Part shown: positions 7,424 to 29,503 of the stretch, one piece after another | Numbering within the stretch: the stretch's first letter is position 1 | How the letters are laid out: the number at the start of each line of letters is the position of its first letter | NCBI RefSeq assembly: GCF_000737315.1 | Contig: NZ_JMCB01000031.1 | Location: 20,808-84,807 of the forward strand | Direction: 5' to 3' | DNA length: 64,000 nt | DNA from: Hyalangium minutum | GTDB taxonomy: Bacteria > Myxococcota > Myxococcia > Myxococcales > Myxococcaceae | Position numbers and translations under genes: made by a program | Notes under the pieces: model-generated | Seen by the model: only the letters and a program-made list of their open reading frames with translations | Told to the model about the DNA's origin: nothing | The model's database searches: none

Positions 7424-10393
7424 ATGCCTGCCCGACTCGCCCAACTCCTGGTTGCGCGCGGCCTCCTCCCGCAGGAGACGGTCGATGCCGCCCTGCGCCA
7501 GCAGCAGTCCAAGGGCGGGCTCATCGACACCGTCCTGCTGGAGACGGGCCGGCTGCGCGAGGCTGATCTGCTGAACCTGCTGGGCGAGGCCTCCGCCTTC
7601 CGCCCGGTGAACCTCGCGGACTTCGAGCCGAACGCCGAGGTCGCCACCCTCATCCCTCCGAAGATTGCCGAGCGGCTGTGCGTGGTGCCACTGTCGCTGG
7701 ACGGCAACACGCTCCACGTGGCGTGTGGCTTCCCGGTGCCGCGCAAAGAGCTGGACGAGGTGGGCTTCCTGCTCGGCAAGCCGCTGGAGCTGTGGGTGGC
7801 CACGGAGGTGCGCGTCCGCGAGTGGATCGCCTCCGTCTACAAGCAGCCGCTCCCCGAGCGCTTCTCGAGCCTGCTGGCTGCGCTCAACAAGCCGTCCACG
7901 GCCGCCGCGCCCACGCTGGCGCCTGCCGCTCCCGCCATGCCTCCGCCACCTCCGCCCGAAGCCATGGAGGAGGCCGAGGAGAGTGGGCTCACGCCCGAGG
8001 CGCTGGAGCGGATGGCGCGCTCGGTGGCCCAGGAGCCCGTCTCCCTCGAGAAGCAGGGTGGAAGCGCCGCACCTGCCGCGCCCGCCGCTTCCGCGCCTGC
8101 GGCGGCAGCGCCTCCGGCCGGCTCGGTTCCGCCACCCGCTTACACGCGCGAGCCGCTGCGCCTCAACATGCAGGCCGGGGCCCCCACACCCGCTGCCTCC
8201 GCATCCCCGCCCCAGCCCTCCGCGCGTCCGGCCGCTCCGGCCACGCCCCAGGCCGGCTCGGCTCCGCCGCCCGCCTACACGCGCGAGCCGCTCCGCCTCA
8301 ACATGCAGGCCGGGGCTCCCGCGGCTGCCACGCCCCAGGCTCCGAACGCCTCGCGTCCGGCGGCTCCCGCTGCTCCCGCCGCTCCCGCTGCTCCTGCCGC
8401 AGGTTCGGTGCCTCCGCCGGCCTACGCGCGTGAGCCGCTGCGCCTCAACATGCCGGCCCCGCAGGCTCCGGCTTCCCCTCCGGCCCAGCCGCCACCGCCA
8501 CCGGCCGCGAGCACGGCCGCCCCCCGTGCTCCCGCAGCTGCTCCCACCGCTGGAGCCACGCCGCAGCGGACTCCCATCACGCAGCCGGGCTTCCCGATGA
8601 CGCCCGCTCCGTCGATGCCGAAGGAGCCGCAGTTCCTCGTCTTCAGCAACCCGGCGCCCGCGATTCCTGCCCCGCGCCGCCCGATGACGCAGCCCGACTT
8701 CCCGATGCCCACGGCGGAGGCCGCTCCCACCGCGACGCCCGCTCCGGTTCCGAGCGCGGCCGCAGTTCTCACCCCCGCGCCCGTTCCCATCACCTCGCTC
8801 GCGCCCGGGGCGGCCGCGCCGCAGCCTCCGAGGCCCGCCGCGCCCGCGAGCCAGGAGGCGCCAGACTGGACGCTGGCCCAGGCACGCGCCGCGCTGAAGG
8901 ACGCCACGCGGGACAGAGATCGCCTCATTGACGTGGCCCTGCGCTTCGGGCGTCGCACGTTCGACTACGTGGCCGCCTTCGCCATCGTCCGCGGCACCGC
9001 AGGAGGCTGGGAGGCCCGTGGCGAAGGCATGACGGGCGAGCAGCTGTCGCAGGTGTCCATTCCGCTCGACGCCAGCAGCGTCTTCCGCACCGTCGCCGTC
9101 ACCCGGGGCAGCTATGCGGGTCCCCTGCCGCCGGACGCGCTCAGCAAGCACTACGTGGAGCTGTTCGGCCGCCAGTCGCCGCGCGCTATCTTCCTCTACC
9201 CGGTGGAGGTGCGCGGCCGGCTCGTGGCGCTGCTGTACGGAGACTGCGGCCAGAAGCCCATCAGCCAGCGGCGCATGTCCGACTTCATGCTGTTCTGCCA
9301 GGACATGCCGAGCGCCTTCCAGGAGCTCATCCTCTTCCGCAAGCAGCGGATGACGGAGCTGCGCGCGCCGGACCTCGCCGAGGCGCTGGGGACTCCTCCC
9401 ACGGCCTCCCCAGCTCCCGCGCCCGCGGTGGTGGCGGGCCTGGGCTGGAGCCCGTTCTCCGGGCGCACGAGCGGCTCCCTGGGCCGCGCCGCGACGATGC
9501 CTCCGCGCGTGACGAGCGAGGAGCGCCCGCCTCCGGACTTCGCCCCGCTGATCAAGCGCCTCACCGGACCGGACGCCGCTCAGCGCACCGGCGCCATGGC
9601 CGAGCTGGCCCGCACGCCCGAGGCCAGCGCGCGCGTGCTGGCGGCGAACTTCCCGGGCCCCACTGCTTGGAGCCGTCTGCCCGTGGTGGACCTCCCCGAG
9701 GCGGATGAGCTGGGCCCCATCCCCGCCGCGCTGTCCCGGCTGGGCCGGTCCGCGGCACAGGCGCTGGCCCCGCTGCTGGACTCGGCAGACCCGGACACGC
9801 GCTACTTCGCGCTGCTCACCGCGGGCAACCTGGCCTACGTGGAGCTGGTGGACGGCGTGCTGCGCGGGCTGTTCGATCTCGAGCCGGACATCTCCAGCGC
9901 CGCGCGCGTGGCGGCCTCCGCGCTCAAGCACCTGCCCCGCTTCGACGCGGCGATGCGCGACTTGCGCCAGGAGCTGACCAACCGCGATCCGCTGCGGCGC
10001 TCGCTGGCGGCACGCGCCCTGGGCTCGCTGCACGACCGGGATGCCATCGAGGGCCTCATCAACCTCACGGGCAGCGACGACGAGATGTGCGCCGAGGCCG
10101 CCGCCGAGGCCCTGCGCGAAATCACCCGCGCGACGCTGGGCCGGCAGCCCCGGCAGTGGACGGCGTGGTGGGCGGAGAACCGCACGCGCCGCCGGGCGGA
10201 CTGGCTCGTGGTGGCGCTGCGGCACAAGGAGCTGGACGTGCGGCTGGCGGCGATTGAAGAGCTCAGCCGCGCGCTCAGCGACACCCTGGGCTACTACGCG
10301 GATGCTCCCGAGTCCGAGCGCGAGATGGCGGTGCGCCGCTGGGAGGCCGCGGCCGTGGATCCCGCCCGAGCCCGGAGGCTGGGCGCGCTCTAA
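7424..10393 (+). CDS. frgA: FrgA-like protein: GSPII_N/MshEN-like N-terminus, Pro/Ala repeats, GAF-like region, HEAT repeats
   Basis: RLAQLLVARGLL...LRQQ, IAERLCVVPL, and C-terminal HEAT repeats (RSLAARALG, RLAAIEEL). It lies upstream of a His kinase and a sigma54 regulator, as in the M. xanthus frg operon. The symbol is from recall. Confidence 0.6.
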   Translation: MPARLAQLLVARGLLPQETVDAALRQQQSKGGLIDTVLLETGRLREADLLNLLGEASAFRPVNLADFEPNAEVATLIPPKIAERLCVVPLSLDGNTLHVACGFPVPRKELDEVGFLLGKPLELWVATEVRVREWIASVYKQPLPERFSSLLAALNKPSTAAAPTLAPAAPAMPPPPPPEAMEEAEESGLTPEALERMARSVAQEPVSLEKQGGSAAPAAPAASAPAAAAPPAGSVPPPAYTREPLRLNMQAGAPTPAASASPPQPSARPAAPATPQAGSAPPPAYTREPLRLNMQAGAPAAATPQAPNASRPAAPAAPAAPAAPAAGSVPPPAYAREPLRLNMPAPQAPASPPAQPPPPPAASTAAPRAPAAAPTAGATPQRTPITQPGFPMTPAPSMPKEPQFLVFSNPAPAIPAPRRPMTQPDFPMPTAEAAPTATPAPVPSAAAVLTPAPVPITSLAPGAAAPQPPRPAAPASQEAPDWTLAQARAALKDATRDRDRLIDVALRFGRRTFDYVAAFAIVRGTAGGWEARGEGMTGEQLSQVSIPLDASSVFRTVAVTRGSYAGPLPPDALSKHYVELFGRQSPRAIFLYPVEVRGRLVALLYGDCGQKPISQRRMSDFMLFCQDMPSAFQELILFRKQRMTELRAPDLAEALGTPPTASPAPAPAVVAGLGWSPFSGRTSGSLGRAATMPPRVTSEERPPPDFAPLIKRLTGPDAAQRTGAMAELARTPEASARVLAANFPGPTAWSRLPVVDLPEADELGPIPAALSRLGRSAAQALAPLLDSADPDTRYFALLTAGNLAYVELVDGVLRGLFDLEPDISSAARVAASALKHLPRFDAAMRDLRQELTNRDPLRRSLAARALGSLHDRDAIEGLINLTGSDDEMCAEAAAEALREITRATLGRQPRQWTAWWAENRTRRRADWLVVALRHKELDVRLAAIEELSRALSDTLGYYADAPESEREMAVRRWEAAAVDPARARRLGAL
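8120..8455 (+). repeat. Three intragenic GS(V/A)PPPAY(T/A)REPLRLNM repeats
   Basis: Copies start at about 8120, 8255 and 8402. Confidence 0.9.
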
Positions 10394-10396
10394 ACC

Positions 10397-11761
10397 ATGC
10401 AAGAGACCTACGACTCCCTGCTCAAGGCAGCACGTGAAGCCCTCGACGGCCAGGATGCACAGAAGGCCTTCTCCGTGTTCCGCCGCGTGCTGGAGTATCC
10501 GGGGGCTCAGGAGCTGGATCACTCCTCGCGCTGGAAGGAGGCGTGGGAGCTCTTCGCGGACATCGCGACGCCCATCGCCGGGGAGGAGTTCGCGGCCATC
10601 GTCCGCCAGGCCGCGCAGGACGAGCGCGACGTCCAGGCGCTGTACAACCTGGGGTATCAGCTCATCGAGCAGTCGCTGCACGGCATGGCGGCCACGGTGC
10701 TGCTGCGCGCGCACCTGCTCGTCCCGGGCGCGGAGCCCATGGTGACGGAGCTCGTCGTCGCCCTGGAGGGCATGGGCGCCCACGCGGAGGCGGCCCGGCT
10801 GCTGCAGGCCCAGCCGCAGCTCGTCCAGAGCAGCTTCATGTGCCGCTACCTGCTGGCCTACAACGCGCTGATGTCCGGGGACGTGGACGAGACGCGCCGG
10901 CTGGCACCCGGGCTGGAGTCGCTGCTCGCGCGCTCCGGAGCGGAGGAAGAGCAAGCCCAGGCGTTCGCCGGCATGAAGGAGCGCATCCACCAGATGCTCG
11001 CCCGTGCGGATGCGCTCCAGGGCGTGTCGCCGCTCGACAAGAAGGACCTGCGCGGGTGGCACTTCGTGACGACGGGCGGCGTGCTGCTGCACCTGTCACC
11101 CTACGGCTTCGACGAGGGAATGACGGGGCGGTACGCCTTCCTCCAGGACTCACAGGCGCTGTGCCTGGAGGGCATCCGGCGGGTGGAGGCAGTGCTGGAC
11201 CAGGCGGGGCGCAAGCCTCCGCGCGTCTTCGTCCTGCCGGACCGGCACAGCGCCATCCTCGCCCACGCCACGGCGCGGGTGCTCGGCCTTCCCACCGAGC
11301 CCTGGCCCGAGCAGGGCAGCGACGCACCCGGGCTCATCGTCGCGTATGACGTGTTGTCGCTGGAGGTACCGCTGCTCCAGACACTCAGGACGCATCGGCC
11401 GGGGCAGGTGCTCTGGAGCCACGCCACGCAGTGGACAGAGGAAGCTCCCTTCGCCGCGGACCTGACGACGTTCCTGTACCAGCAGAACACCTCGCCCTGG
11501 GGCGAGCGCCTCCGGGTCAACCCAGAGACTCAGAAGGTCGAGCGCACCGCTCCCACCGAGGGCACTGTGGAGGCGCTGGCCGAAGAAGTCCCCTCCGCCC
11601 TGTTGGAGGACACCGCGCTGGCGGACCTGCCCGAGCTGACGAAGCGGGTGGCGGCCATGGCTCAGGTGAAGGGTGACGCGGCGGGCGGCCTGTTCCGCGA
11701 GCAGGGCCACCGGCGCCGAAGCCTCACGGACTCGCCCGTGAAGAGCAACCGCTTCAATTAA
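10397..11761 (+). CDS. Hypothetical TPR-like protein
   Basis: 454 aa; helical N-terminal half (ALYNLGYQL, CRYLLAYNAL); 3 bp after the upstream stop. Confidence 0.7.
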   Translation: MQETYDSLLKAAREALDGQDAQKAFSVFRRVLEYPGAQELDHSSRWKEAWELFADIATPIAGEEFAAIVRQAAQDERDVQALYNLGYQLIEQSLHGMAATVLLRAHLLVPGAEPMVTELVVALEGMGAHAEAARLLQAQPQLVQSSFMCRYLLAYNALMSGDVDETRRLAPGLESLLARSGAEEEQAQAFAGMKERIHQMLARADALQGVSPLDKKDLRGWHFVTTGGVLLHLSPYGFDEGMTGRYAFLQDSQALCLEGIRRVEAVLDQAGRKPPRVFVLPDRHSAILAHATARVLGLPTEPWPEQGSDAPGLIVAYDVLSLEVPLLQTLRTHRPGQVLWSHATQWTEEAPFAADLTTFLYQQNTSPWGERLRVNPETQKVERTAPTEGTVEALAEEVPSALLEDTALADLPELTKRVAAMAQVKGDAAGGLFREQGHRRRSLTDSPVKSNRFN

Positions 11762-11773
11762 CAGGAGCCGGGG

Positions 11774-13327
11774 ATGAACGAGTCCGCCTGGCTGAGCCTC
11801 GCGGCGTGCACGGGACAGCTCGCGCTGGCGGGGCTGGCTCTGGCGCGCGTGGGCAAGAGCCCCCTGGCCCTGCCCCTCTCCCTGCTGTCCATCGCCCTGT
11901 CCACGTGGAACTTCGCCCACTTCGCCTATGCCGTCTCGGGCGAGGAGGGCTGGCGGCTCGTGGCGCTGACGGCCACCATCATCACGGCTCCCTGCGCGGC
12001 GCACTTCATCCTCGCCTTCACCGGCCAGCGCCGCCGCTTCGCCCCGCTCATCTACTCCACCTACGGCCTCTTCGGCCTGTTCGCCGTCGTGGCGCTGTCC
12101 GCCCTGGGCTCGCCGTGGGTGGCCGTGCGAGCCACCTCGCTCACCTTCTCGCGCCTCACCATGGCGCTCGTCACCCTGCTGCTGGGCGGCGGCTGGGCCC
12201 TGCTGGTGCTCCACCTGCGCCGGGCGCCCAGCCTGGAGGAGCGCATCCGCACCGGCCTGCTCCTGCTGGGCCTGGTGCTCCTGGTGGCGCTGCCCGGCAC
12301 GGATTTAATGGCGGACCTGGGCTTCAACGTGCCCCGGCTCGGCACCCTGGGCACCCTGCTGGGCCTGCCCGTCATGGCCACCGTGGCCCTGCGCTTCCAG
12401 CTGTTCGGCAAGGCCCTGTCCAGCGAAGCGGCGCTGTACGCGGTGACGCTCGCGGTGGTGGGCGTGCTGGCCTACCTCATCGTCTTCCGCCTCTTCGCCG
12501 CCGAGCAGGGCGCCCTCGTGGTGGGCACCGCCGCCATCACCTTCGCCCTGCTGGCCGCCGCGCGCCGGGTCGTCAGCGCGCTCGTCACCCAGCGCGAGCG
12601 CCTGGAGCGCCTGGCCACCCTGGGCCGCTTCTCCGCGCAGATGGCGCACGACTTGAAGAACCCCATCGCCGCGCTCAAGGGCGCCGCGCAGTTCCTCAAG
12701 GAGGAGCACGCGCAGGGCCGCCCCTGGGACGACAAGGGAGACTTCCTGGACTTGCTGCTGGAGCAGGTGGAGCGGCTGGATCGGGTGGTGAGCACCTACC
12801 AGCGCCTCGGGCGCGTGGAGCCGCTGCCCCGGCCGCTGGACTTGAACCAGCTGGTGGAGGACGTGCTGTCGCTCCAGGCCTTCACCGGGTACGCCAGCGT
12901 GAAGCGGGAGCACAGCTTGGAGAAGGACTTGCCGAAGTGCTCGGGGGACTACGACTTGCTGGCCAACGCGCTGGAGAACCTGGTGCGCAACGCCTGCGAG
13001 GCCATGCCCCAGGGTGGCACCCTGATGGTCCGCACGCAGCGTGAGAGCACGGACAGAGCGGGAGTGGTGGTGAGTGTGGAGGACACCGGCGAGGGCATGG
13101 ACGCCCGCACCCGCGAGCGGGCCTTCGACGAGTTCTTCACCACCAAGGCCTCGGGGAGCGGGCTGGGGCTGGCCTTCGTGCGGCGGGTGGTGGAGGCGCA
13201 CGGGGGCGAGGTGTCGCTGACGAGCCGGGAGGGGCGCGGTACCATCGTGAGCCTGCGCCTGCCCTGTACGGCAGCGCCCGAGGGCGTTGCCGCCCCTGGA
13301 GAAGGAGCACCGTGGCCGAGCCGCTGA
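11774..13327 (+). CDS. Multi-TM sensor histidine kinase (FrgB-like)
   Basis: About 7-8 TM segments, MAHDLKNP H-box, NLVRNA, DTGEG, FFTTK, GSGLGL. Confidence 0.92.
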   Translation: MNESAWLSLAACTGQLALAGLALARVGKSPLALPLSLLSIALSTWNFAHFAYAVSGEEGWRLVALTATIITAPCAAHFILAFTGQRRRFAPLIYSTYGLFGLFAVVALSALGSPWVAVRATSLTFSRLTMALVTLLLGGGWALLVLHLRRAPSLEERIRTGLLLLGLVLLVALPGTDLMADLGFNVPRLGTLGTLLGLPVMATVALRFQLFGKALSSEAALYAVTLAVVGVLAYLIVFRLFAAEQGALVVGTAAITFALLAAARRVVSALVTQRERLERLATLGRFSAQMAHDLKNPIAALKGAAQFLKEEHAQGRPWDDKGDFLDLLLEQVERLDRVVSTYQRLGRVEPLPRPLDLNQLVEDVLSLQAFTGYASVKREHSLEKDLPKCSGDYDLLANALENLVRNACEAMPQGGTLMVRTQRESTDRAGVVVSVEDTGEGMDARTRERAFDEFFTTKASGSGLGLAFVRRVVEAHGGEVSLTSREGRGTIVSLRLPCTAAPEGVAAPGEGAPWPSR

Positions 13328-14712
13328 AGGGAAGCGTGTTGCTGGTGGACGATGACCCCGCCGTGGCCAAGGTGCTCGGCGCGCTGCTGGTGCAGGCGGG
13401 GCTCACGGTGCACACGGCCAAGAGCGGAGCCGAGGCGCTGAGCCTGCTGGGCCAGAAGCCCATCGACGTGGTGGTGAGCGACGTGCGGATGCCGGGCATG
13501 AACGGCCTGGAGCTGCTCGGCGAGGTGACGCGGCTGTACCCGGATGTGCCCATCGTCCTGATGACGGCGCACGGCACGGTGCCCATGGCGGTGGAGGCCA
13601 TGAAGGCGGGCGCGGCGGACTTCATCCTCAAGCCGTTCGACCGGGAGGAGATCCTCTTCACCATCCGCAAGGCGCTGCTGCGGGCGCAGGGGGACGTGGA
13701 GCGCTCGCCGCTGAAGACGAGCGCCTTCGTGGGGCGCAGCGCGGCGATGGCCGAGGTGGAGGCGCTGCTGACACGGGCGGCCACGGGCACGGCGACGGTG
13801 CTGGTGCGCGGCGAGTCCGGCACGGGCAAGGAGCTGGCGGCGAAGGTGGTGCACGACGCCAGCCCCCGGCGCTCGGGCCCCTTCGTGAAGCTGCACTGCG
13901 CGGCGCTGCCGGAGACGCTGCTGGAGAGCGAGCTGTTCGGCTACGAGAAGGGCGCCTTCACCGGGGCGGCCACGCGCAAGCCCGGCCGGGTGGAGCTGGC
14001 GAACGGGGGCACGCTCTTCCTGGATGAGATTGGCGACATCTCCCTGCACGTGCAGGTGAAGCTGCTGCGGCTGCTGCAAGAGCGCGAGTTCGAGCGCCTG
14101 GGAGGCACGCAGACGCTGAAGGTGGACGTGCGCTTCGTGGCGGCCACGCACCGGCCGCTCGAGGAGATGGTGAAGAAGGGCGAGTTCCGCGAGGACCTCT
14201 TCTACCGGCTGAACGTAGTGCCGGTGTGGATACCGCCGCTGCGGGCGCGGCCGGAGGACATCGAGCCGCTGGCCCGGCACTTCCTCGAGGTGCACGCCAA
14301 GGCCAACGGGCGGCCGCCCTTCACGCTGACGGCGGACGCGCTCCAGGCGCTGCAGGCCCAGCCATGGCCAGGCAACGTGCGCCAGGTGCAGAACTTCATG
14401 GAGCGGCTGGTGGTGCTCTCAGACGGGCCCTCGCTCACGGGCGAGGACGTGGCGCGCGAGCTGGCCCGGCAGCCGGGGCTGATGCCCACGGGCTTCCAGG
14501 CTCAGACCGCTCCCCCGAGCACGACTGCACCGGCGGCGGTGACCCCAGGGAGCGAGCCGAAGACCTTGGAATCCCAGCGGCGTGACACCGAGCGCCAGGC
14601 CCTGCTGGATGCGCTGAAGCGCGCCGGGGACAACCGCACCCTCGCCGCGCGCCTTCTGGGGATCAGCCGCCGCACCCTCTACAACAAGCTCGAGGAGCAG
14701 GGACTGCTCTGA
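13312..14712 (+). CDS. Sigma54-dependent response regulator, NtrC family (FrgC-like)
   Basis: REC domain (LLVDDD, SDVRMP), GESGTGKE, GAFTGA, C-terminal Fis-type HTH. Confidence 0.95.
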   Translation: MAEPLKGSVLLVDDDPAVAKVLGALLVQAGLTVHTAKSGAEALSLLGQKPIDVVVSDVRMPGMNGLELLGEVTRLYPDVPIVLMTAHGTVPMAVEAMKAGAADFILKPFDREEILFTIRKALLRAQGDVERSPLKTSAFVGRSAAMAEVEALLTRAATGTATVLVRGESGTGKELAAKVVHDASPRRSGPFVKLHCAALPETLLESELFGYEKGAFTGAATRKPGRVELANGGTLFLDEIGDISLHVQVKLLRLLQEREFERLGGTQTLKVDVRFVAATHRPLEEMVKKGEFREDLFYRLNVVPVWIPPLRARPEDIEPLARHFLEVHAKANGRPPFTLTADALQALQAQPWPGNVRQVQNFMERLVVLSDGPSLTGEDVARELARQPGLMPTGFQAQTAPPSTTAPAAVTPGSEPKTLESQRRDTERQALLDALKRAGDNRTLAARLLGISRRTLYNKLEEQGLL

Positions 14713-14767
14713 CAGGGTTGGTGGGACTGACCCGTTTTCCCGCATTAAAAAGAATTTCTAAGTCCTA

Positions 14768-14796
14768 TTGACTTCCAGTCTTGTTTGATTTTTACT
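14768..14796 (+). promoter_or_regulatory. Candidate sigma70-type promoter of the precursor gene
   Basis: TTGACT-17 bp-TTTACT, preceded by the AT-rich tract ATTAAAAAGAATTTCTAA. The -10 match is weak. Confidence 0.4.
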
Positions 14797-14844
14797 GCAT
14801 CCACCTCGAACGCTTCCGAGGCAACCCACCACAAGGGGACCCCC

Positions 14845-15054
14845 ATGAACGAGACCATCCAGGATATCCGCAGCAAGGTGCAGGATCTGCTGAACCGCGC
14901 GCAGGTGGATGCCAGCTTCCGTCAGTCGATGCAGATGAACCCCGCTGCGGCTCTCTGCACCGCGGGTGTCCCCAATGCAGTTGCCCTCGTGTCCCAGGAC
15001 GAGATCGCTGACTGCTCCTGGACCTGCCTCTGGACCTGTTCCTGGACGAGCTAG
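14845..15054 (+). CDS. Lanthipeptide precursor with NHLP-clan-like leader and core ending CSWTCLWTCSWTS
   Basis: AAGGGG RBS; 69 aa; leader RAQVDASFRQSMQMNPAAAL; Cys/Ser/Thr-rich C-terminus; directly upstream of the synthetase. Confidence 0.85.
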   Translation: MNETIQDIRSKVQDLLNRAQVDASFRQSMQMNPAAALCTAGVPNAVALVSQDEIADCSWTCLWTCSWTS

Positions 15055-15087
15055 TCCTCCAGGGATAACGCAGGCTTCGAATGTATC

Positions 15088-15134
15088 GAGCGCGGGTAAA
15101 GGGTGTAAAAACCCTGAACCCGCGCTCTTTTTTT
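15088..15134 (+). terminator. Intrinsic terminator/attenuator between precursor and synthetase
   Basis: GAGCGCGGGT/ACCCGCGCTC outer stem, AGGGT/ACCCT inner stem, then T7. Confidence 0.8.
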
Positions 15135-15161
15135 GTCCTCTGCACCGCGGGTTGGAGGTAG

Positions 15162-17816
15162 GTGGAAGTGACCGCTGATCCATTCCTCGAGCTGATCTCA
15201 GAGGCATGTGCGTCGCACCCTGGCTTCCAGGACGGTTGGCAGCTCCACCCCCCGTCGCGCGGGTGGATCCGAGTCACCCCCCTCCACTCGACGCTCCCGA
15301 AACAGGGGTGGAAGCTGCACCTCACCGCGGGAGAGCAGTCCTCCCGGCAGATTCTCACCCAGGCCCTTCCCGTGTTGCTGGAGGAGCAGGCCGCGTTCAA
15401 GGTGGCCGCTTCGCAGCAAGTGCTGGGAGATCTCAACGAAGGACGGAGCGGGCTGAGCCAGGTCGGTAAGTTCCTGACCATCTACCCACGGGATGAGGCA
15501 CACGCGGTGCGCCTGGCCACCCGGCTCGACGAGGCGACGCGCGGCCTGTCAGGTCCCCAGATACCTTCTGATCGGCAGCTGCGCCCGGGAAGCTGCGTCT
15601 TCTACCGCTACGGCAGCTTCAGCGGCCGCCACATGCAGCTGCCCATCGGCGAGCTGGTGGAGATCCTCGAGGCGCCCGATGGGCAGCTCTTCCCAGACAA
15701 GCGGGAGTCGGTCTACCGCGCGCCTCCCCCCTGGGTGAGAGACCCCTTCACCACGGGGCCCGGGCCCGCCGAGCCCCCCAAGGCTGCCCCCGGCGTCATC
15801 GCGGGACACTACGCGACGGTGGCCAGCATCCACCGCTCGGCCCGCAGCCAGGTCTTCCTCGCCATTGATCTCAAGGAGATGCGCAAGTGCGTGCTCAAGC
15901 AGGTGAAGCGCGCCGCGGGAGACGGTGACGCGGGCCGCCGGCGCCTGCACCACGAGATGGAGGTGCTGACCGCCCTGGCTCCGTCCCCCTGGTTTCCCAC
16001 GCCCTACCAGTTCGTCGAGGACGAGACGTCCGCTTACCTCGCCATGGAGGACATTGAGGGCGACACGCTCTCCGCTCACATCCAGAAGCTCTCGGCGCGC
16101 GGCTGCTTCGCCTCGGAGGCGCAGTTGGTGTCCTGGGGGAGCCAGCTCGCCGAAGCCCTGGGGAGCATGCATGAGCGAGGGCTCGTCTTCAGCGATTTGA
16201 AGTCCGCCAACGTGCTGGTCCCCCCGCAGGGAAAGCTCCGCCTCATTGATCTGGAGCTGGCCCATGGCGCCTCGCTGCCGCGCGTGGAGGGGGCCGGAAA
16301 GGGAACGCACGGCTACATGACGCCGGCACAGGCCTCTGGGCAGCCATCCACCGCTGCGGATGACATCTACGCCCTCGGCGCCCTGCTCTACTTCGCCGCC
16401 ACGGGCGCGGAGCCCTCGCACGCCCCCAGCGGCTCGCTGCTCGTCCGGCCTCTCTCCCGGCTCAACCCCTCGCTCTCTCCCGCGCTCGAAGCCCTCATCA
16501 CACGGTGCCTGGCGCCGGAGCACGCGCCCCAGTCGATGCGAGAGGTGGCCCAGGCGCTCGCACAGATGGGGACGCCCTCCACCACGGCCCAGCTCACGCC
16601 CGCGGACCGCGCTCCCTCCGCCGCACCTCCCGGGGACCTCTACCGCACCCAGGCGCTGCGGCTGGGAGACACGCTCGTCCATACCGCCCAGCGCGATCCC
16701 TCCACCGGAGCCGTCTTCTGGAATCATGGGCACCCGCTGAACGGGGGCCTCCCCTCGCGGGACATCAACCTGGGGAGCGCGGGCATCCTCCTGGCCCTGT
16801 CGGCCCTGGTCTCCACGTTCCAGAAGCCCTCCCACCGCGCAACGCTGGCCGAGGCAGCCGCGTGGCTGGCGAAGGCGCCGAGGCCCGAAGGCCCACCGAA
16901 CCCGGGGCTCTATGTGGGCGAGGCGGGCGTGGGGCTGGCGCTCCTGCGCGCTGGGCGCACGCTGGAGGACGAGGGGCTGGTGCAGGCGGCGCTCGAGCGG
17001 GCCCGCGCCGTGGCCCCCCTCCCCTTTGCCTCACCGGACGTGTTCAACGGCACGGCCGGACGCGTGCGCTTCCACCTCGAGGTGTGGCGGGAGCTGGACA
17101 GTGCCGAGAACCTCCAGGCCGCGCTCACGGCCGGAACCTCCCTGCTGTACAGCGCGCAGCGCTCGGAGGCGGGAGAGCTCAAGTGGGCCATCCCTCCTGG
17201 CTATGAGGGACTGAGCGGCAACATCCAGCTGGGCTACGCCCACGGGGCCGCCGGCATTGCCGACACCCTGCTGGACCTCTATGAGGCGACGCGCGAGCAG
17301 CGCTTCCTCGAGGCCGCCTGCGGAGCCGGGCGCTGGCTGCTCGCCCAGGCAGCCCCCGCGCTGGAGGACGGCAGCGGCCTGTGCTGGCCCTCGCAAGCGG
17401 GCGCCGCGCCGCATGCCGCGTTCTGGTGTCACGGCTCGGCCGGAGTGGGGAAGTTCTTCCTGCACGCCGCTCGGCTGGAGGCGCTCCCGGAAGCCGCCAC
17501 CGTCGTGGAGCGCTGCTTCAAGACCGTGGCCCGAGGCACCCGCTGGGCCAACCCCGTCCAGTGCCACGGGCTGTCCGGCAACCTCGAGTTCCTCCTGGAC
17601 GTGTACCAGGCCACGCGCAAGCCCGAGCACCTCGAGGCGGTGCAGGAGCTCGTGGGACTCCTACAGGCGTTCGCCGTGGAGAAGGAAGGCCACCTCTACT
17701 GGCCGGCGGAGAACCCGTTCCTGCTGAGCCCCTCCTATATGGTGGGCTACGCGGGAGTCGCGGCGTGCCTGCTGCGCCTCGCGGAGCCCGAACAGCGCGC
17801 CTCCCTGCTGCGCTGA
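15162..17816 (+). CDS. lanL: Class IV lanthipeptide synthetase (LanL-type: lyase-kinase-LanC-like cyclase)
   Basis: Lyase motifs QGWKLHL, GKFLTIYP, YRYGSF; kinase motifs DLKSANV, LIDLELA, GTHGYM; cyclase motifs GYAHG, WCHG, QCHG (Zn ligands present). Confidence 0.9.
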   Translation: MEVTADPFLELISEACASHPGFQDGWQLHPPSRGWIRVTPLHSTLPKQGWKLHLTAGEQSSRQILTQALPVLLEEQAAFKVAASQQVLGDLNEGRSGLSQVGKFLTIYPRDEAHAVRLATRLDEATRGLSGPQIPSDRQLRPGSCVFYRYGSFSGRHMQLPIGELVEILEAPDGQLFPDKRESVYRAPPPWVRDPFTTGPGPAEPPKAAPGVIAGHYATVASIHRSARSQVFLAIDLKEMRKCVLKQVKRAAGDGDAGRRRLHHEMEVLTALAPSPWFPTPYQFVEDETSAYLAMEDIEGDTLSAHIQKLSARGCFASEAQLVSWGSQLAEALGSMHERGLVFSDLKSANVLVPPQGKLRLIDLELAHGASLPRVEGAGKGTHGYMTPAQASGQPSTAADDIYALGALLYFAATGAEPSHAPSGSLLVRPLSRLNPSLSPALEALITRCLAPEHAPQSMREVAQALAQMGTPSTTAQLTPADRAPSAAPPGDLYRTQALRLGDTLVHTAQRDPSTGAVFWNHGHPLNGGLPSRDINLGSAGILLALSALVSTFQKPSHRATLAEAAAWLAKAPRPEGPPNPGLYVGEAGVGLALLRAGRTLEDEGLVQAALERARAVAPLPFASPDVFNGTAGRVRFHLEVWRELDSAENLQAALTAGTSLLYSAQRSEAGELKWAIPPGYEGLSGNIQLGYAHGAAGIADTLLDLYEATREQRFLEAACGAGRWLLAQAAPALEDGSGLCWPSQAGAAPHAAFWCHGSAGVGKFFLHAARLEALPEAATVVERCFKTVARGTRWANPVQCHGLSGNLEFLLDVYQATRKPEHLEAVQELVGLLQAFAVEKEGHLYWPAENPFLLSPSYMVGYAGVAACLLRLAEPEQRASLLR

Positions 17817-17837
17817 GCCGCGCGTGCGCCCGGATGC

Positions 17838-18839
17838 CTAGCCCACCCGGAGAACGGGGGGGACATGCTGGAACGTGGGGGCATCCCGCGTCAGCTCCTC
17901 CTGCAGCGGACGGAGCGCCGCGCCGCGCCGCGCACTCAGCCGGTACAGCTCCAGCACGAGGGCATGCCACAGGGACGGGGTGGCTCCGCGCCCGGCCGAG
18001 AGGAACACGGGGACCTCCGCCAGGAACTCCTCATCCCGCTCCTCCGCCGCCAGCCACCGGAGCCGCAACCACTGGTGGGGACGCGCAAACGGAGCGCACG
18101 CCGACGCGCCGCTCTGGAGATGCGGGCCGAAGCGCTCCAGCCTGCGCCGTGTCTCAGCACCCTCGGGCGCGAGGACCTCGGCCAGAGATTCGAGGACATC
18201 CTCGAACATCATGGCTGCGACGTCCGCTTGCAGGGGAACTGCCGCAGTGGCGCGGAGCGCCGACAGCGGCCAGGCGTTGGCATCCCCCTCGATGTAGGAG
18301 AGCAGCGGGAGCCCCAGCTCCAGCGCCTCATCCAAACGCCCCCGCCGGGCCTCCATGTGGATCAGGTTGCGCACGAGGTGGATGCGCCGCGGTTCGGTGA
18401 ACGTGTGGCCATGCGCCACCTGAAGCGTGTTGGTCGCCTCCAGCGACTTCAGCAGCGCGGCGTGCGCCTCCTCGAAGCGCGCCGTGCGGTAGAGGAGGTA
18501 GGCCTCCCCGGCCTCGTGGAGTGTCGTCACGAGCAGGCGCGCTTCCGGGCTCAGCTCCTCCAGGCCCAGCTCGGCCCGGGCCTCTTGCATGCTCTGCTCG
18601 GCCGCCGTGTTGTCGCCAGCGCGAGAGGCGCGAAGTCCCCGCTCGCGGGGGCCCACACTTCGCCGGATGCGCATGATCTCCTGGGGCGAGAACCGGGCGC
18701 TGGCGAGACGCTGCGCCTCTTCCTCGAACCGCCGCAGCAGCAAGGCCTGGGCCGAACGCGAGTTCACGCTCTTGCCCTGTGTGTAGGCCTGCAGAACCGT
18801 TGGCACCAGCGAGGTGAGTTGCTCAGCGGCGCGAACCAT
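17838..18839 (-). CDS. Hypothetical all-helical (TPR-like) protein convergent on lanL
   Basis: 333 aa from ATG at 18839; helical patterns such as EAYLLYRTARFEEAHAALLKSLE. Confidence 0.65.
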   Translation of the reverse strand: MVRAAEQLTSLVPTVLQAYTQGKSVNSRSAQALLLRRFEEEAQRLASARFSPQEIMRIRRSVGPRERGLRASRAGDNTAAEQSMQEARAELGLEELSPEARLLVTTLHEAGEAYLLYRTARFEEAHAALLKSLEATNTLQVAHGHTFTEPRRIHLVRNLIHMEARRGRLDEALELGLPLLSYIEGDANAWPLSALRATAAVPLQADVAAMMFEDVLESLAEVLAPEGAETRRRLERFGPHLQSGASACAPFARPHQWLRLRWLAAEERDEEFLAEVPVFLSAGRGATPSLWHALVLELYRLSARRGAALRPLQEELTRDAPTFQHVPPVLRVG

Positions 18840-18927
18840 GCAGAGGACTCCCAAAAGCGACGAAGAATGCCCACCTGAGCCTATAAGGAATCTCCTGGGT
18901 GTTGCTACCGGCCGGAGGCCCCGAACC

Positions 18928-19338
18928 ATGGTGGAGCTGCGCGTCTGCATCGACGTCGATGACTTGGACAAGGCGATTGGGTTCTACACGGAGGTGCTCG
19001 GGCTGAAAGTGGGGCGCCGGTTCGGGGACAGTGGCGCGGAGCTGCTCGGAGGCTCGGCCCCCATCGACTTGCTCGCCAAGCCCGCAGGCAGCCAGCCCAG
19101 CCCGAACTCCTTCTCCATGCGCGACTACCGCCGGCACTGGACACCCGTCCACCTGGACTTCGTCGTCACCGACGTGGAGGCCGCCGTGGAGCGGGCCAAG
19201 GCCCAGGGCGCCGTGCTGGAGCACCCCATCAAGGATCAGCCCTGGGGCCGGCTCGCCCTGCTCGCGGACCCGTTCGGACACGGCATCTGCTTCCTGCAGT
19301 TCAAGGGCCGCGGCTACGACGAGCTGGGCGGGAGCTGA
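18928..19338 (+). CDS. VOC/glyoxalase family protein
   Basis: IDVDDLDKAIGFYTEVLG, HLDFVVTDVEAA, ADPFGHGICF. Confidence 0.9.
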   Translation: MVELRVCIDVDDLDKAIGFYTEVLGLKVGRRFGDSGAELLGGSAPIDLLAKPAGSQPSPNSFSMRDYRRHWTPVHLDFVVTDVEAAVERAKAQGAVLEHPIKDQPWGRLALLADPFGHGICFLQFKGRGYDELGGS

Positions 19339-19344
19339 CGCGCG

Positions 19345-21420
19345 TCAGTAGTGGTACTGCGTCTTCTTCGCCCACTCCGTCTTCCCGTACTTGCGCTGCA
19401 GCAGCTGGAAGGCCTGCTTCGACAGAGCGCTGCGGGCCTTGCTCCCTTCCTCATAGGAGGTGCAGAAGGTGCGATCGAAGCGCGTCTGCCGCACGGACTC
19501 GTGCAGGGCCTCCGGCACCAGCGCGTCATCCGGGTGGCGCTTCGCGTAGTCCAGCGTGAACTGGATGAGCAGCTCCGGGGACTCGCCCAGCTTGCCCAGT
19601 GCCTGGCGCTCGGCAAGCACCTCCCGGCGCTCGGCCACGGAGATGAAGCGCGTCCCACAGGAGCCCTTCGACGCGTCGCAATCCTGGTAGAAGTCCGTGG
19701 GCTCTCCGCCGCACCAGCCGGACCCCAAGCAGATGTCGTAATCGAACCCGCCTTGCGTCCGATAGGGGCTCACGTTCGGCGACATCCCCGGCGACTTGAG
19801 CAACACCCACACGGCGGCCATCCTCCGCTCCTCGGGCTTCTCGCGGGCCTTCACCTTCGCCAGCACCTCCTTCAGCTCCGGCGCCACCTGCTCCACCAGC
19901 GGCTCCAGCGCCTTCTCCTCCTCCCAGCGGTCCAGCAGCGCCGCTCGCGCCCAGCCCCCCAGCACCACCTCGCGGCGAAGCTTGGGGTCCAGCGCCGCCA
20001 GCATCTTCGCGTCCTTGAAGCGGGCCACCGGCACCCCCAAGGTGAAGAAGCGGTCCGCCTCCGAGGTCGACAGGTGCGCGTACTTCGCCCACTCCTCGAA
20101 GGTCAGCGCCGCCTGGCGCAGGCCCTCGGACAGGCGCTTGACGGTCAGCGGCGGCAACGTCGTCGCGCCCGACTCCAGCAACGGGAGAAGCTCCGCTCGC
20201 GCCTCGTCGAAGCGGCCCTGGGCGAGCGCCATCCGGCCCCGCGCCGCATGCACTGTCACGTAGGCCGGTGAGTCCTTGGGAATGGAGGCGCTCTGGGCGA
20301 GCAGCTCTGCAAGCTCCGGCTCCTTCCCCGTCGCCTGGCTCAGCGCCGCCACGAGCCAGGGCTGCGAGCGCGTCTTCTTCCACCACTCCACCGCCCGCGC
20401 ATAGCCATCCTTGCCCCGGAACACGTCGAGGAACGACGACAGCTCATCCGTCGACGGAGGTTGCCCTTTCCGGAGTGCGAAGTAGTCGCGCCATGCATAG
20501 CCGAAGTTGTCGTCCGGCTTCTCCAGCAGCACCCGGCCCAGCAGGTTGAGCTGCTTGTCAGGGCGCAGGCGGTAGTCGATGAACCACGTGAGCTGCCGCG
20601 TCTGCCGGTGGAGATCCTTCAACCCAGGGTCCTTCACGATGGCCACGCACCGCTCGCGCGCCCTCTCCAGCAGCACTCGCTTCTCTTCGTCGGCCTGGGC
20701 CACCAGCGTCGCCTGACGGATGACGGCGCGCACCGCCACGAGCCGGGCCCACCCACGCCATGGAGACGCCGCGTCCTTGGCAATCGCATCCAGTTGCCGG
20801 ATCGCCTCCTCGAACTCCCCTGCGTAGAAGAGCGCTGCGGCCGTCTGGTAGGCGCGATCCGTACGCGCCCCGGCCGAGGCGTTCGCGGGAGCAGGCGCTG
20901 GCAGCACCTTCTCCCCTCTTCCACAGTTGGCGAACACCGCGTCCTGCGCCTTCGCCCAGTCGATCACCTCGGGGTGGCTGGCGCCCAGCTTCGCGATGCG
21001 CTCGTCCAGTGACTGGGCGGCCACCTCGAAGGCGCCCGTGAGGCAGTTGAAGAACCATGTGTACTCTCCGAAGGGAGCCTCGGTGGCGATCTCGCCGCGC
21101 TCGGAGGGCACGGGCACCTTGGCGCGGGCGTCCGTCCAGGTTCCCGTGTACACGCCGGGGTAGGAGCTCTCGAGCGGCAGCATGCTCGCCACGAGCTCCT
21201 TCTCCGGCCCTGCCAGGCCGCGCATCAGCAAGAAGCCCACGGTCTGGCACTCCGGCGAGTGCTCCGTCAGATCGCCCAGCTTTCCGGCCATGCAGGCCTG
21301 AAGGTCATCCCTGGGCGAGGGCTCCGAGCAGTCGGGGCCACACGCTTCGCTCGGAGCGGCCCACAGCAAGGGCACGGCCAGGGTGAGCGCCAGCGCCGCA
21401 CGTGCGAAGAAGGACTTCAT
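19345..21420 (-). CDS. Exported helical-repeat hypothetical protein
   Basis: Signal peptide MKSFFARAALAL...SEACGP; AAALFYAGEFEEA; C-terminal WAKKTQYHY; ATGA overlap with the upstream gene. Confidence 0.75.
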   Translation of the reverse strand: MKSFFARAALALTLAVPLLWAAPSEACGPDCSEPSPRDDLQACMAGKLGDLTEHSPECQTVGFLLMRGLAGPEKELVASMLPLESSYPGVYTGTWTDARAKVPVPSERGEIATEAPFGEYTWFFNCLTGAFEVAAQSLDERIAKLGASHPEVIDWAKAQDAVFANCGRGEKVLPAPAPANASAGARTDRAYQTAAALFYAGEFEEAIRQLDAIAKDAASPWRGWARLVAVRAVIRQATLVAQADEEKRVLLERARERCVAIVKDPGLKDLHRQTRQLTWFIDYRLRPDKQLNLLGRVLLEKPDDNFGYAWRDYFALRKGQPPSTDELSSFLDVFRGKDGYARAVEWWKKTRSQPWLVAALSQATGKEPELAELLAQSASIPKDSPAYVTVHAARGRMALAQGRFDEARAELLPLLESGATTLPPLTVKRLSEGLRQAALTFEEWAKYAHLSTSEADRFFTLGVPVARFKDAKMLAALDPKLRREVVLGGWARAALLDRWEEEKALEPLVEQVAPELKEVLAKVKAREKPEERRMAAVWVLLKSPGMSPNVSPYRTQGGFDYDICLGSGWCGGEPTDFYQDCDASKGSCGTRFISVAERREVLAERQALGKLGESPELLIQFTLDYAKRHPDDALVPEALHESVRQTRFDRTFCTSYEEGSKARSALSKQAFQLLQRKYGKTEWAKKTQYHY

Positions 21421-22163
21421 GGTGACTTCTCCCGGAGCTGCTGCAGGTCCTGGGCAGTCCAGGACCGGGGGTTGAACCAATACCTGCGGCGTCCGGAGGG
21501 CAACGAAGGCTGGGGCTCATCCACCACGAAGCCCACGCTCTCCCGGCACCGAGCGCCGTTGAAATCTCCTCGCCGCGCCAGCTCCGCGCGCACCTGCTGC
21601 GAGTCCACGCCCATGCGGAACACCATGGGCACCACCTCGTCCACCGGCAGCCCGTCGAGCCAGCCGTCGTCCAGACACCACGATGCCAGCGCCGTCATCG
21701 ACAGACGCAGGGTTGCGGGCAGAGCGGCCCGAAGGTCCTGGAGCAGCGCGCGGTAGAAGGGGCGCTCGGAGGCGCGGGCGTCGTAGTCCACCTGCACAGC
21801 GTCCGGGGCCTGCTGCTGCACCTGATCGGAGATGAGCTTCACGAGCCTGGCGCGCTGGGCCTCGCTGGGCGCAGTGCCACGTGCCACCTCGATGCGCATC
21901 ACCGCCAGCCGGTACGTGCCCGGAGGCACCACGAGGGGCTGGCGGCGGCGGTAGGCCTGCACGCCCTCTCCGGAGAGCTGGAGAGTGACCGCATGGAAGG
22001 CGACGCCCTCTCGCGCCGGGTCGATGAAGTCGAGCCGCTCGGGGCGCTCCCAGGCCCACAGAAACACGGGCGGGGGCTCCGCCGCGCTCGCGGGCACGGC
22101 CAGGAGCAGCAGCCCCAGCGACAGGGCACGAAACCTCCGGGCACACCGAGGGGAGGAATTCAT
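21417..22163 (-). CDS. DUF3142-family exported protein (GH18-like barrel remnant)
   Basis: LWAWERPE, VQVDYDARASERPFYRALL, LSMTALASWC, VDEVVPMVFRMG. Confidence 0.8.
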   Translation of the reverse strand: MNSSPRCARRFRALSLGLLLLAVPASAAEPPPVFLWAWERPERLDFIDPAREGVAFHAVTLQLSGEGVQAYRRRQPLVVPPGTYRLAVMRIEVARGTAPSEAQRARLVKLISDQVQQQAPDAVQVDYDARASERPFYRALLQDLRAALPATLRLSMTALASWCLDDGWLDGLPVDEVVPMVFRMGVDSQQVRAELARRGDFNGARCRESVGFVVDEPQPSLPSGRRRYWFNPRSWTAQDLQQLREKSP

Positions 22164-22206
22164 GCCCCCACGATGCCACGTCTCCCTGACCGTGTCGGCC
22201 AGGGAA

Positions 22207-29119: not shown

Positions 29120-29503
29120 CTACTTCTTATGCTCGATGGAGACGGCCTTGTTCTCCATCTTCTCGATGCCGAAGGAGGCACGCACCTCGGCACCCGGCTG
29201 GAACTCCTTCTTCAGGTGGGACTCGATGCGCTGGTCCTTTTTCAGCTCCTTGCCATCCACCATCGTCTGATGGCTCACCCGGAGCGGGATGATGGCTCCC
29301 TGCTCAGACTCGACCAGAAGATCGTCCGACTTCACCCCCACCACCCTGCCTGTCAGCTCCTTCTGACCCTGCTGCATCTGACCCTGCTGCATCTGGCCCT
29401 GCTGCGTCTGGCCGTGCATCTGGCCCTGCTGCGTCTTGTCCGCCGCGAACGCAGCCCCGCCCAGCATCAGCGCCGTCACAACCCCCAAAGCCTTCCAGTT
29501 CAT
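29120..29503 (-). CDS. Small secreted protein with QQGQ repeats
   Basis: Signal peptide ending AAFA; TQQGQMHGQTQQGQMQQGQMQQGQ followed by a small beta-domain. Confidence 0.8.
   Translation of the reverse strand: MNWKALGVVTALMLGGAAFAADKTQQGQMHGQTQQGQMQQGQMQQGQKELTGRVVGVKSDDLLVESEQGAIIPLRVSHQTMVDGKELKKDQRIESHLKKEFQPGAEVRASFGIEKMENKAVSIEHKK

Follow-up and report, generated by a model that had tools for sequence, protein, structure and literature searches.

A small open reading frame (ORF) of the myxobacterium Hyalangium minutum ends in three consecutive Cys-x-Trp-Thr units, which raises the questions of what kind of peptide this array represents, how its cysteine and threonine residues would be joined and how the repeated architecture arose. 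The frame, named here lanA, is located at 14845-15054 on the forward strand of a 64,000-nucleotide stretch of contig NZ_JMCB01000031.1 (positions 20,808 to 84,807; assembly GCF_000737315.1), referred to below as the window. An earlier note, made from the letters alone, had read 15013-15051 as a lanthipeptide core that could form three successive Cys(i)-Thr(i+3) rings and that may have evolved by repeat expansion. The explanation that we favor combines the core of a class IV lanthipeptide precursor, its modification by the adjacent LanL synthetase, a topology of three rings in a row and an old, fixed array; taken as a whole, we consider it evenly poised between right and wrong, its parts being of very different strength.

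Identification of the precursor core and its synthetase

Direct reading and translation of 14845-15054 showed that the sequence claimed for 15013-15051 and its numbering from C57 to S69 were exact. From ATG 14845, lanA encodes 69 amino acids (MNETIQDIRSKVQDLLNRAQVDASFRQSMQMNPAAALCTAGVPNAVALVSQDEIADCSWTCLWTCSWTS) with the C-terminus ...ADCSWTCLWTCSWTS, and its G+C content at third codon positions (GC3) of 0.80 is a coding signature; translation, GC3, homologues and a published entry together identify the ORF as a class IV lanthipeptide precursor gene. The core array (15013-15048, + strand), recognized by its sequence, by Tandem Repeats Finder (TRF), by translation and by its conservation in homologues, comprises unit 1, TGCTCCTGGACC (15013-15024; TGC TCC TGG ACC), giving C57-S-W-T60, unit 2, TGCCTCTGGACC (15025-15036; TGC CTC TGG ACC), giving C61-L-W-T64, and unit 3, TGTTCCTGGACG (15037-15048; TGT TCC TGG ACG), giving C65-S-W-T68. 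The array is followed by AGC (15049-15051, + strand), coding for the C-terminal residue Ser69, a Ser directly after unit 3 being kept across leader types, and by the stop codon TAG (15052-15054).

The gene lanL (15168-17816, + strand), which starts 113 nt after the end of the 69-aa lanA ORF, encodes a class IV lanthionine synthetase of 882 aa composed of a lyase, a kinase and a Zn-dependent cyclase, as assigned from Pfam and NCBIfam matches and catalytic residues. The Pfam domains RamC_N (residues 22-203, 1.8e-51), Pkinase (228-425, 2.1e-25) and LANC_like (537-879, 2.7e-40) were found, and the NCBIfam equivalog model for LanL, NF038150, covered residues 31-879 and scored 762 bits, above its cut-off of 650, while the class III LanKC model reached 380 bits, under its cut-off of 575. 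In an alignment of 25 sequences (the LanL of the window and 24 homologues), the lyase K-L-H motif (K51/H53), K80 and K103 and the kinase residues K246, D345, N350 and D363 are conserved, and we take their roles to be those established for VenL. The residues D626, H694, C756, C801 and H802, which sit in the motifs DVFNG, GYAHG, FWCHG and QCHG, are invariant; they correspond to D642, H710, C769, C814 and H815 of SgbL, which were required for cyclization by mutagenesis (PMC9292228). Automatic annotation begins lanL at GTG 15162 (884 aa), and the alternative GTG 15168 (882 aa) is favored because of a GGAGG at 15154-15158 and because the published synthetic gene opens with MTADPFLELIS.

Three features that define class IV systems are found here, namely lyase, kinase and LanC-like cyclase in one protein, retained Zn ligands, which set LanL apart from the class III LanKC, and a small adjacent precursor with a leader and a core of Cys and Ser/Thr. 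Since a LanL of this composition lies directly downstream, 15013-15051 is therefore, with a confidence that comes at least close to certainty, the core of a class IV precursor. The lanthipeptide core proposed in the earlier note is thus borne out by an adjacent LanL that scores above the NF038150 cut-off and keeps its Zn and acid residues invariant.

The residues that precede the core, 1-56 (14845-15012, + strand), form a leader region, with a provisional boundary to the core, for which weak, sub-threshold profile matches were obtained. The best match was to TIGR04509, with weaker ones to NF038399 and TIGR03793; these three models of the nitrile hydratase-like leader peptide (NHLP) clan gave 28.5 bits for TIGR04509 (cut-off 34), and 24.9 (cut-off 40) and 17.5 bits (cut-off 50.9) for the other two, none above the curated cut-off. 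Among 40 family members, matches at E<=0.01 were found in 28 for NF038399, where those of the relatives are again sub-threshold, and in 22 for TIGR04509. The leader is NHLP-like, without membership in the curated clan. Its central motif ..Q.IR.K.Q.LL.. is conserved in three alignments (A1, A2 and A5), and a (D/E)-V-(S/A)-G-Y junction precedes the core in many relatives, with an acidic stretch at this place in the myxobacterial clade.

Homologous precursors

A word-indexed search with the precursor alone retrieved only the protein of the window itself, and a scan of contigs with the single LanL sequence confirmed no locus. An alignment-based LanL scan succeeded; it returned the best 80 loci, among which the closest myxobacterial genomes were not included. 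Homologues of the precursor were reached through the genes beside LanL homologues and then by profile. Precursors are encoded directly upstream of LanL homologues with 96%, 63%, 60%, 59%, 54% and 55% identity. The C-termini are ...ADCSWTCMWTCAWTS at the locus whose LanL is 96% identical (L001), ...EECADTCAATCWITVWLPPSYPPY at 63% (L002), ...QTCTWTCSWTCAWTSLEQA at 60% (L005) and ...NCSWTCRIITFW in Cystobacter fuscus (59%), while the precursors of an Archangium sp. and a metagenomic relative carry ...DCAGL[FL]SCLLLT... The profile search added close members with SCSWTCMWTCAWTS.., SCSWTCAWTCAWTS.., GCSWTCAWTCAWTS.. and PCSWTCLVTCLITS... H. minutum belongs to the Archangiaceae (Myxococcota), in agreement with Archangium and Cystobacter being the closest named relatives of its LanL.

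A HMMER search over 1.84 billion representatives gave 115 matches at E<=1e-3, most of them peptides of 60-110 aa with the same leader and a Cys/Thr-rich tail. In 156 distinct C-termini, 94 contiguous (C-x-x-[ST])n arrays were counted, of which 59 have two units, 30 three and 5 four, and irregular extensions reach up to five units (P0150). The four-residue periodicity seen in the window by the earlier note is, with these 94 arrays, a conserved feature of the family. Four precursors (P0133, P0155, P0184 and P0189) contain 2-4 whole cassettes of the form C-x-G-I-T-C-x-W-T-C-S-W-T-G behind one leader; one of these multi-core precursors, at L210 (317-826), has cassettes that are mutually 69-78% identical in DNA and is immediately followed by the gene of a LanL-type lyase-kinase (35% identity, E 1e-55).

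Every close homologue has (C-x-x-T)x3, usually with Ser next, and exactly three units were found in all ten distinct precursors of the close clade (LanL identity down to 60% where the enzyme is known). Ser comes next in 11 of the 30 three-unit arrays, and also in the LanL-adjacent cores of Kitasatospora and in the LanIV-3 precursor described below. Peptides with an NHLP-like leader are encoded beside LanLs of about 40-50% identity in genomes and metagenome-assembled genomes of Chloroflexota, Actinomycetota, Acidobacteriota, Abditibacteriota, Cyanobacteriota and Bacillota, commonly in multiple copies, and the Streptomyces-type LanLs (about 32% identical) go with the classical actinobacterial leader.

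Ring topology

The family indicates how the residues of the array might be paired. Across the 94 arrays, position 1 of the unit is Cys in 228 of 228 cases and position 4 is Thr in 189 and Ser in 39. Ser occupies position 2 in 25% of the units, the others having Leu, Ala, Gly, Thr, Trp or Val there, and position 3 is taken by Trp or by a different bulky hydrophobic residue; because position 2 is variable, Ser58 and Ser66 are excluded as general ring partners of the family. The arrays open with Cys and close with Thr or Ser, and a Thr that frequently precedes them is part of an irregular C-x3-T unit. Since Cys follows directly after the array in only 7 of 94, the register argues for pairing within the unit and against Thr(k) to Cys(k+1).

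The polarity of the rings is constrained by the residues upstream. In L001, residue 50 is Tyr, so that no Ser or Thr is present for 17 residues upstream of Cys57; among the arrays of three or more units, 7 of 35 have no Ser or Thr in the 8 upstream residues and 7 of 35 have Ser or Thr only at position 4. The first Cys, if cyclized, must therefore attack a downstream dehydro residue. In the core of the Chondromyces apiculatus homologue (L021), the sole Ser or Thr, a Ser, follows the Cys on its C-terminal side. At n = 2, 3, 4 and 5 there are as many Cys as position-4 Thr/Ser, and three-Cys cassettes recur as modules in multi-core precursors. A related myxobacterial peptide, that of Chondromyces crocatus (...KCMLLTII), was shown to acquire one dehydration and one methyllanthionine at its C-terminus (PMC9576775). 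For these five comparative observations, three contiguous non-overlapping Cys(i)-Abu(i+3) methyllanthionine (MeLan) rings, in which Abu is the aminobutyrate moiety derived from Thr, would be the simplest model, one to which we give an even chance.

In this model, LanL would bind the NHLP-like leader of LanA, as in the established LanL pathway. Its kinase domain would place phosphate on Thr60, Thr64 and Thr68, with Ser58, Ser66 and Ser69 as further possible targets, its lyase domain would eliminate this phosphate to yield dehydrobutyrine (Dhb) and dehydroalanine (Dha), and its Zn-dependent cyclase domain would add the thiolates of Cys57, Cys61 and Cys65 to Dhb. The rings Cys57-Abu60, Cys61-Abu64 and Cys65-Abu68 would result, each enclosing one variable residue and one Trp; the Ser residues would remain as Ser or Dha, and the leader would then be cleaved off. 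We tentatively propose, with somewhat more doubt than trust, a product of 13 residues or slightly longer made of three back-to-back MeLan rings whose polarity is reversed, from an N-terminal Cys (i) to a C-terminal Abu (i+3), with one Trp each; it may be the shared pharmacophore of NHLP-like-leader LanL systems spanning Myxococcota, Chloroflexota, Actinomycetota, Acidobacteriota and Cyanobacteriota, and of the actinobacterial LanIV-3.

The polarity and the ring size proposed here both have precedents. Cinnamycin and duramycin (class II) contain MeLan with Cys N-terminal to Abu, a precedent for polarity, and rings B, D and E of nisin (class I) are four-residue (i, i+3) rings, a precedent for size. 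These peptides are made by other enzyme classes (LanM; LanB/LanC) and have no three tandem reversed i,i+3 rings, a topology that to our knowledge has not been described for any characterized lanthipeptide. Within class IV, the peptide SflA, made by SflL of Streptomyces sp. NRRL S-1022, has two non-overlapping MeLan rings (PMC8341899), so that LanL enzymes can make serial independent rings; unlike the three rings proposed here, SflA has two.

Several points weigh against the three-ring model. The polarity with Cys N-terminal to the dehydro residue is the minority one among characterized lanthipeptides (cinnamycin type), and we know of no characterized peptide with three reversed-polarity rings in a row. 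It is also a premise of the comparative argument that every Cys is cyclized and that one topology holds throughout the family. The sole published attempt to express this cluster, LanIV-S3, is, according to the searchable text of the report, not among the two clusters for which a modified peptide was detectable, and the same text does not name the ring-forming Thr of the Chondromyces crocatus peptide, one of these two products (PMC9576775).

A rival explanation keeps the same precursor and enzyme and supposes that the rings are not periodic, either overlapping or nested (e.g. Cys57-Abu64 with Cys61-Abu68, or Dhb60 joined to Cys65), or that cyclization is partial and leaves one or two rings with free Cys or Dhb. 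Most characterized class IV peptides, those of the venezuelin type, have overlapping rings (PMC8341899), and the C. crocatus peptide received one dehydration and one ring in E. coli, as the searchable text has it (PMC9576775). A ring from Thr60 to Cys65 would be sterically ordinary. Against this stands the failure of non-periodic schemes to generalize to arrays of 2, 4 and 5 units with the same C...T register. Schemes of the usual polarity would leave Cys57 partnerless in L001, and likewise the first Cys of the arrays that lack an upstream Ser or Thr, and the adjacency of Thr and Cys would require a ring between neighboring residues, which we know from no lanthipeptide. On balance, we regard non-periodic or partial rings as unlikely, while a serious competitor of the three-ring model.

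Origin of the repeated architecture

At the DNA level, TRF reported 15012-15047 with period 12, 3.0 copies, 79% matches and a score of 51. The window has 70% G+C and contains 31 TRF rows with scores of at least 40, and the array is, as a DNA repeat, ordinary for it. The top-scoring tandem repeats of the window, at 29362-29436 (period 15/27, score up to 108) and 63863-63990 (period 51, score 128), are unrelated to the core array.

The identity expected between units was obtained from 20,000 back-translations of CSWTCLWTCSWT, in which codons were drawn as they are used in 21 confident genes of the window. The observed unit-to-unit identity, 28 of 36 pairwise positions, is that expected from the simulations (mean 27.0, standard deviation 1.9, P(sim>=obs) = 0.45), and the nucleotide periodicity is therefore fully explained by peptide periodicity and codon bias. 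As a peptide motif, (C.WT)x3 is highly non-random: one occurrence was found when the window was translated in all six frames, and none in 40 first-order Markov simulations. The 12-bp DNA periodicity is a mere imprint of a selected peptide periodicity.

A recent slippage or duplication of a 12-bp unit, with a unit number still labile at the locus, would account for the period-12 array, and it is in line with the different unit numbers of distant relatives and with the duplicated cassettes of 69-78% DNA identity mentioned above. We consider it improbable here. Besides the agreement of the unit identity with codon usage (P = 0.45), each orthologous unit of the window and L001 keeps its own synonymous codons (Cys TGC/TGC/TGT, Thr ACC/ACC/ACG), and the sole differences between the two cores, L62M and S66A, fall at unit position 2. 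Both observations leave recent expansion unsupported at this locus. In addition, the ten close-clade precursors are all three-unit, and in Actinomycetota the same (CxxT)3-S core is found again, joined to a leader that is not related.

The three-unit architecture thus appears old and fixed, as far as the compared sequences indicate, with a unit number that varies only at deep divergence. The repeat expansion suggested in the earlier note as the origin of the core is not sustained if a recent event is meant. The variation in unit number that the note expected among homologues does exist in distant relatives, where it ranges from 2 to 5 with multi-cassette forms, and is absent in the close relatives, where the count stays at three.

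Comparison with known systems

The cluster is already known. It is entry 35 in the dataset of Ayikpoe et al. 2022 (Nat Commun 13:6135), where it is listed, in the searchable text, as the class IV cluster 'LanIV-S3' of Hyalangium minutum with precursor WP_044199331.1 (MNETIQ...ADCSWTCLWTCSWTS) and LanL WP_044199333.1 (PMC9576775). The 69-aa precursor given there is identical to LanA, and the synthetic LanL gene begins as lanL of the window does when read from GTG 15168. Of the seven class IV clusters that this work refactored for E. coli, the text reports modified products from two, those of C. crocatus and a Streptomyces sp. (PMC9576775). A discussion of the periodic core and of the topology of LanIV-S3 was not found in the searchable text. 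The locus is thus a mined, refactored and unproductive class IV cluster.

This outcome bears on a further rival, in which the two genes are silent or LanL leaves the peptide unprocessed, the enzyme being inactive on the core or in need of an unlinked partner. The missing report of a modified peptide for this cluster after refactoring in E. coli (PMC9576775, searchable text) fits such a situation, as does the lack of a protease, transporter or immunity gene conserved beside lanA-lanL. Conversely, even widely diverged relatives keep lanA next to lanL and retain the core pattern, in which changes fall mainly at the variable position, and every catalytic residue of LanL is intact. The lack of product could reflect degradation, insolubility or inactivity, and negative results are known to arise when class IV precursors are unstable in E. 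coli (PMC8341899; PMC9576775, searchable text). We consider a silent or unprocessed pair quite improbable.

As described in the searchable text, the C. crocatus Cm c5 peptide (WP_050432093.1, ...KCMLLTII) carries one dehydration and one C-terminal MeLan (PMC9576775). Like the window, this system is myxobacterial, has a leader of the NHLP-like family (..DVRGDMTEILDQARKDAAFSEELL..), a two-gene lanA-lanL organization and a short hydrophobic C-terminal core with Cys then Thr. Unlike the window, it has one Cys and one ring (C-M-L-L-T, i+4 if the downstream Thr is used) and no repeat. Cores of the C. crocatus type are carried by three relatives of the window (L007, L008 and L021).

The array itself finds its counterpart in LanIV-3 of Streptomyces sp. 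Termitarium-T10T-6 (SCE51647.1, ...GCTRTCTWTCSITSIEQQ), which has a (C-x-x-T)x3-Ser core as in the window and which was likewise, in the searchable text, among the clusters without detectable product (PMC9576775). Cores of Kitasatospora adjacent to LanL end in ...CASTCSWTCSWTSAAE (L077) and ...CTYTCSVTCEYTSAAE (L077/L080 loci). Near the C-terminus, the LanL-associated (C-x-x-T)x3-Ser of the window, CSWTCLWTCSWTS, can be compared with GCTRTCTWTCSITS, CASTCSWTCSWTS and CTYTCSVTCEYTS. Unlike the window, the LanIV-3 and Kitasatospora systems have an actinobacterial class III/IV leader (..ELQTL.. / ..ALEMLPGEEA..) and a LanL of about 32% identity. On the sequences compared, (C-x-x-T)3-Ser appears to be a core motif shared by non-homologous leaders, which is no demonstration of common descent of the whole genes.

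Venezuelin, globisporin and streptocollin share the enzyme class and the chemistry of the window (PMC8341899, PMC9292228) and differ from it by four overlapping lanthionine or MeLan rings, an actinobacterial leader and a core that is not periodic. For growth of a core, stackepeptin (class III) gives a precedent, its third Sx2Sx2-5C motif being ascribed to motif multiplication (PMC8341899), although this is a labionin motif made by a different enzyme. According to a 2025 review, characterized class IV work lies mainly in Actinobacteria (PMC12328550). In the searchable literature, with subscription papers outside its scope, no solved structure of any (C-x-x-T)n peptide was found, and a search for the peptide string matched only degenerate primers for polymerase chain reaction. 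Neither the core motif nor Hyalangium was found in the accessible text of the supplements of Walker et al. 2020.

Limits of the cluster and rejected chemistries

The gene order is lanA, a terminator-like hairpin and lanL, and only lanA-lanL is kept across homologous loci: lanA is also directly upstream of lanL in L001, L002, L005-L008 and L212. Upstream of lanA, a promoter-like element of sigma-70 type, TTGACT-17 nt-TTTACT, is predicted at 14768-14796 (+ strand); both hexamer blocks are kept in L001, while the intergenic bases around them vary. The consensus promoter scanner demands A at the second position of the -10 hexamer and did not list this element. At this locus the promoter and terminator scanner reported no terminator and a sole promoter-like site, which is antisense. 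A Shine-Dalgarno-like AAGGGGA (14833-14839, + strand), also conserved in L001, is found 5 nt upstream of the ATG.

Between the two genes, RNA folding revealed a nested, intrinsic-terminator-like hairpin (15088-15134, + strand; conserved in L001), with a 10-bp G+C-rich outer stem around a 5-bp inner stem followed by T7, which the scanner had skipped by its rule on loop size. Its folding energy is -31.6 kcal/mol (z = -6.3), and none of 200 shuffles was equally stable. The hairpin is likely an attenuator that sets the ratio of precursor to enzyme, a usual layout in operons for peptides made by the ribosome and modified post-translationally (RiPPs).

Directly upstream, Pfam and NCBIfam matches identify a histidine kinase (11774-13327, + strand) and, next to lanA, a sigma-54-dependent NtrC-type response regulator (13312-14712, + strand). 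Both genes are shared only with the near-identical locus L001, where the 3' end of the regulator gene also precedes lanA, and the regulator is not present at the other homologous loci. No sigma-54 promoter (-24 GG / -12 GC; GG-N10-GC) was seen by eye before lanA, and the two genes are at most putative members of the cluster. On the other side, the gene of a 333-aa all-alpha protein (17838-18839, - strand), convergent with lanL, was rejected as a part of the cluster: it has no Pfam or NCBIfam match and is common to L001 only.

Because the homologous loci compared show no conserved protease or transporter gene next to lanA-lanL, the leader is probably removed by proteases encoded elsewhere, as described for the way in which class III/IV systems lose their leaders (PMC8341899).

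Other chemistries were considered and rejected. Labionin formation (class III) does not agree with a core without SxxSx(2-5)C and with a synthetase that has Zn ligands. For aminovinylcysteine (AviCys) there is no C-terminal Cys and no decarboxylase gene, and for azoles there is no YcaO gene, among the ten ORFs scanned (7424-22256), which also contain no radical SAM gene. Disulfide chemistry was rejected because the number of Cys is odd. Assignment to the cinnamycin family was discarded: the leader matched the cinnamycin/DurB models NF033431 and PF19398 weakly, under their cut-offs, with 18.7 (cut-off 35) and 18.1 bits (cut-off 26.6), respectively, and the synthetase is a LanL. Genes for lysinoalanine or hydroxy-Asp tailoring were absent among the scanned neighbors.

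Related loci

A DNA pattern of three TGYNNNTGGACN units was tried as a family detector in metagenomes and rejected, its matches being mostly 12-bp satellites with only L139 and L107 precursor-like. The satellite matches (L089-L168) contain up to 16 units, often on eukaryotic-looking or low-complexity contigs, which calls for caution in pattern mining. Because the collection-wide degenerate scan for (CxWT)3 DNA thus gave mostly long 12-bp satellites without RiPP context, the DNA pattern alone is not diagnostic. The prospect that the array of the window is itself fortuitous or a product of simple sequence, a 12-bp satellite with one frame that reads C-x-W-T by accident, is nevertheless negligible, since exactly three in-frame units end a conserved 69-aa ORF with a ribosome-binding site, a terminator and an adjacent LanL, and since conservation of the protein in homologues with diverged DNA already refutes chance.

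At L107 (37-289 of contig Ga0209460_1000013, 513 kb), two adjacent small ORFs end in ..AADCTWTCAWTCAWTGVVEQQ and ..CTWTCAWTCGWTGVVEQL and have a third kind of leader (..IDEEVVSVAELHKFEGEG..). Three longer proteins of 182-351 aa (P0105, P0108 and P0115) contain 2-4 tandem leader-plus-core modules, each ending in ..DCGHDTCRLT..CGWTVCGKTTNSC, and resemble precursors that were fused or joined end to end, with another type of Cys/Thr core. Several loci in the set L009-L088 (e.g. L036, L041, L014 and L043) have 2-6 different precursors flanking LanL, in Chloroflexota, Abditibacteriota and other phyla, with one NHLP-like leader and varied cores, e.g. ..CSLTCSVT.. and the Tyr-rich ..CTYYTDYVVYGCTYYTY.

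At L002 (7754-9700), L003 (2805-4751) and L004 (2908-4854), a gene of the X-Pro dipeptidyl-peptidase family (Peptidase_S15/PepX_C) follows LanL, and the precursor has a Pro-rich tail (..CWITVWLPPSYPPY); the enzyme may be a dedicated trimming peptidase. At L212 (1-3017), two radical SAM/SPASM genes are divergently upstream of a lanA-lanL pair encoding P0120 (..GDCSWTCSWTCWWTSW).

Significance

The array described in the earlier note was a correct reading of a cluster that genome miners had catalogued and tried to express. Few class IV peptides have been characterized so far, namely the venezuelin type, SflA and two added in 2022. In the present comparison, (C-x-x-T)n is among the most recurrent class IV core designs (94 arrays in 156 C-termini), found on two unrelated leaders and in several phyla, and it has no solved structure. 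If the periodic model of reversed polarity is true, it would represent a new ring pattern and would mean that the addition of a Cys to a Dhb located downstream is routine for LanL cyclases. It would also make these precursors a naturally modular scaffold, with 2-5 rings and multi-cassette forms, for the engineering of small Trp-displaying thioether peptides.

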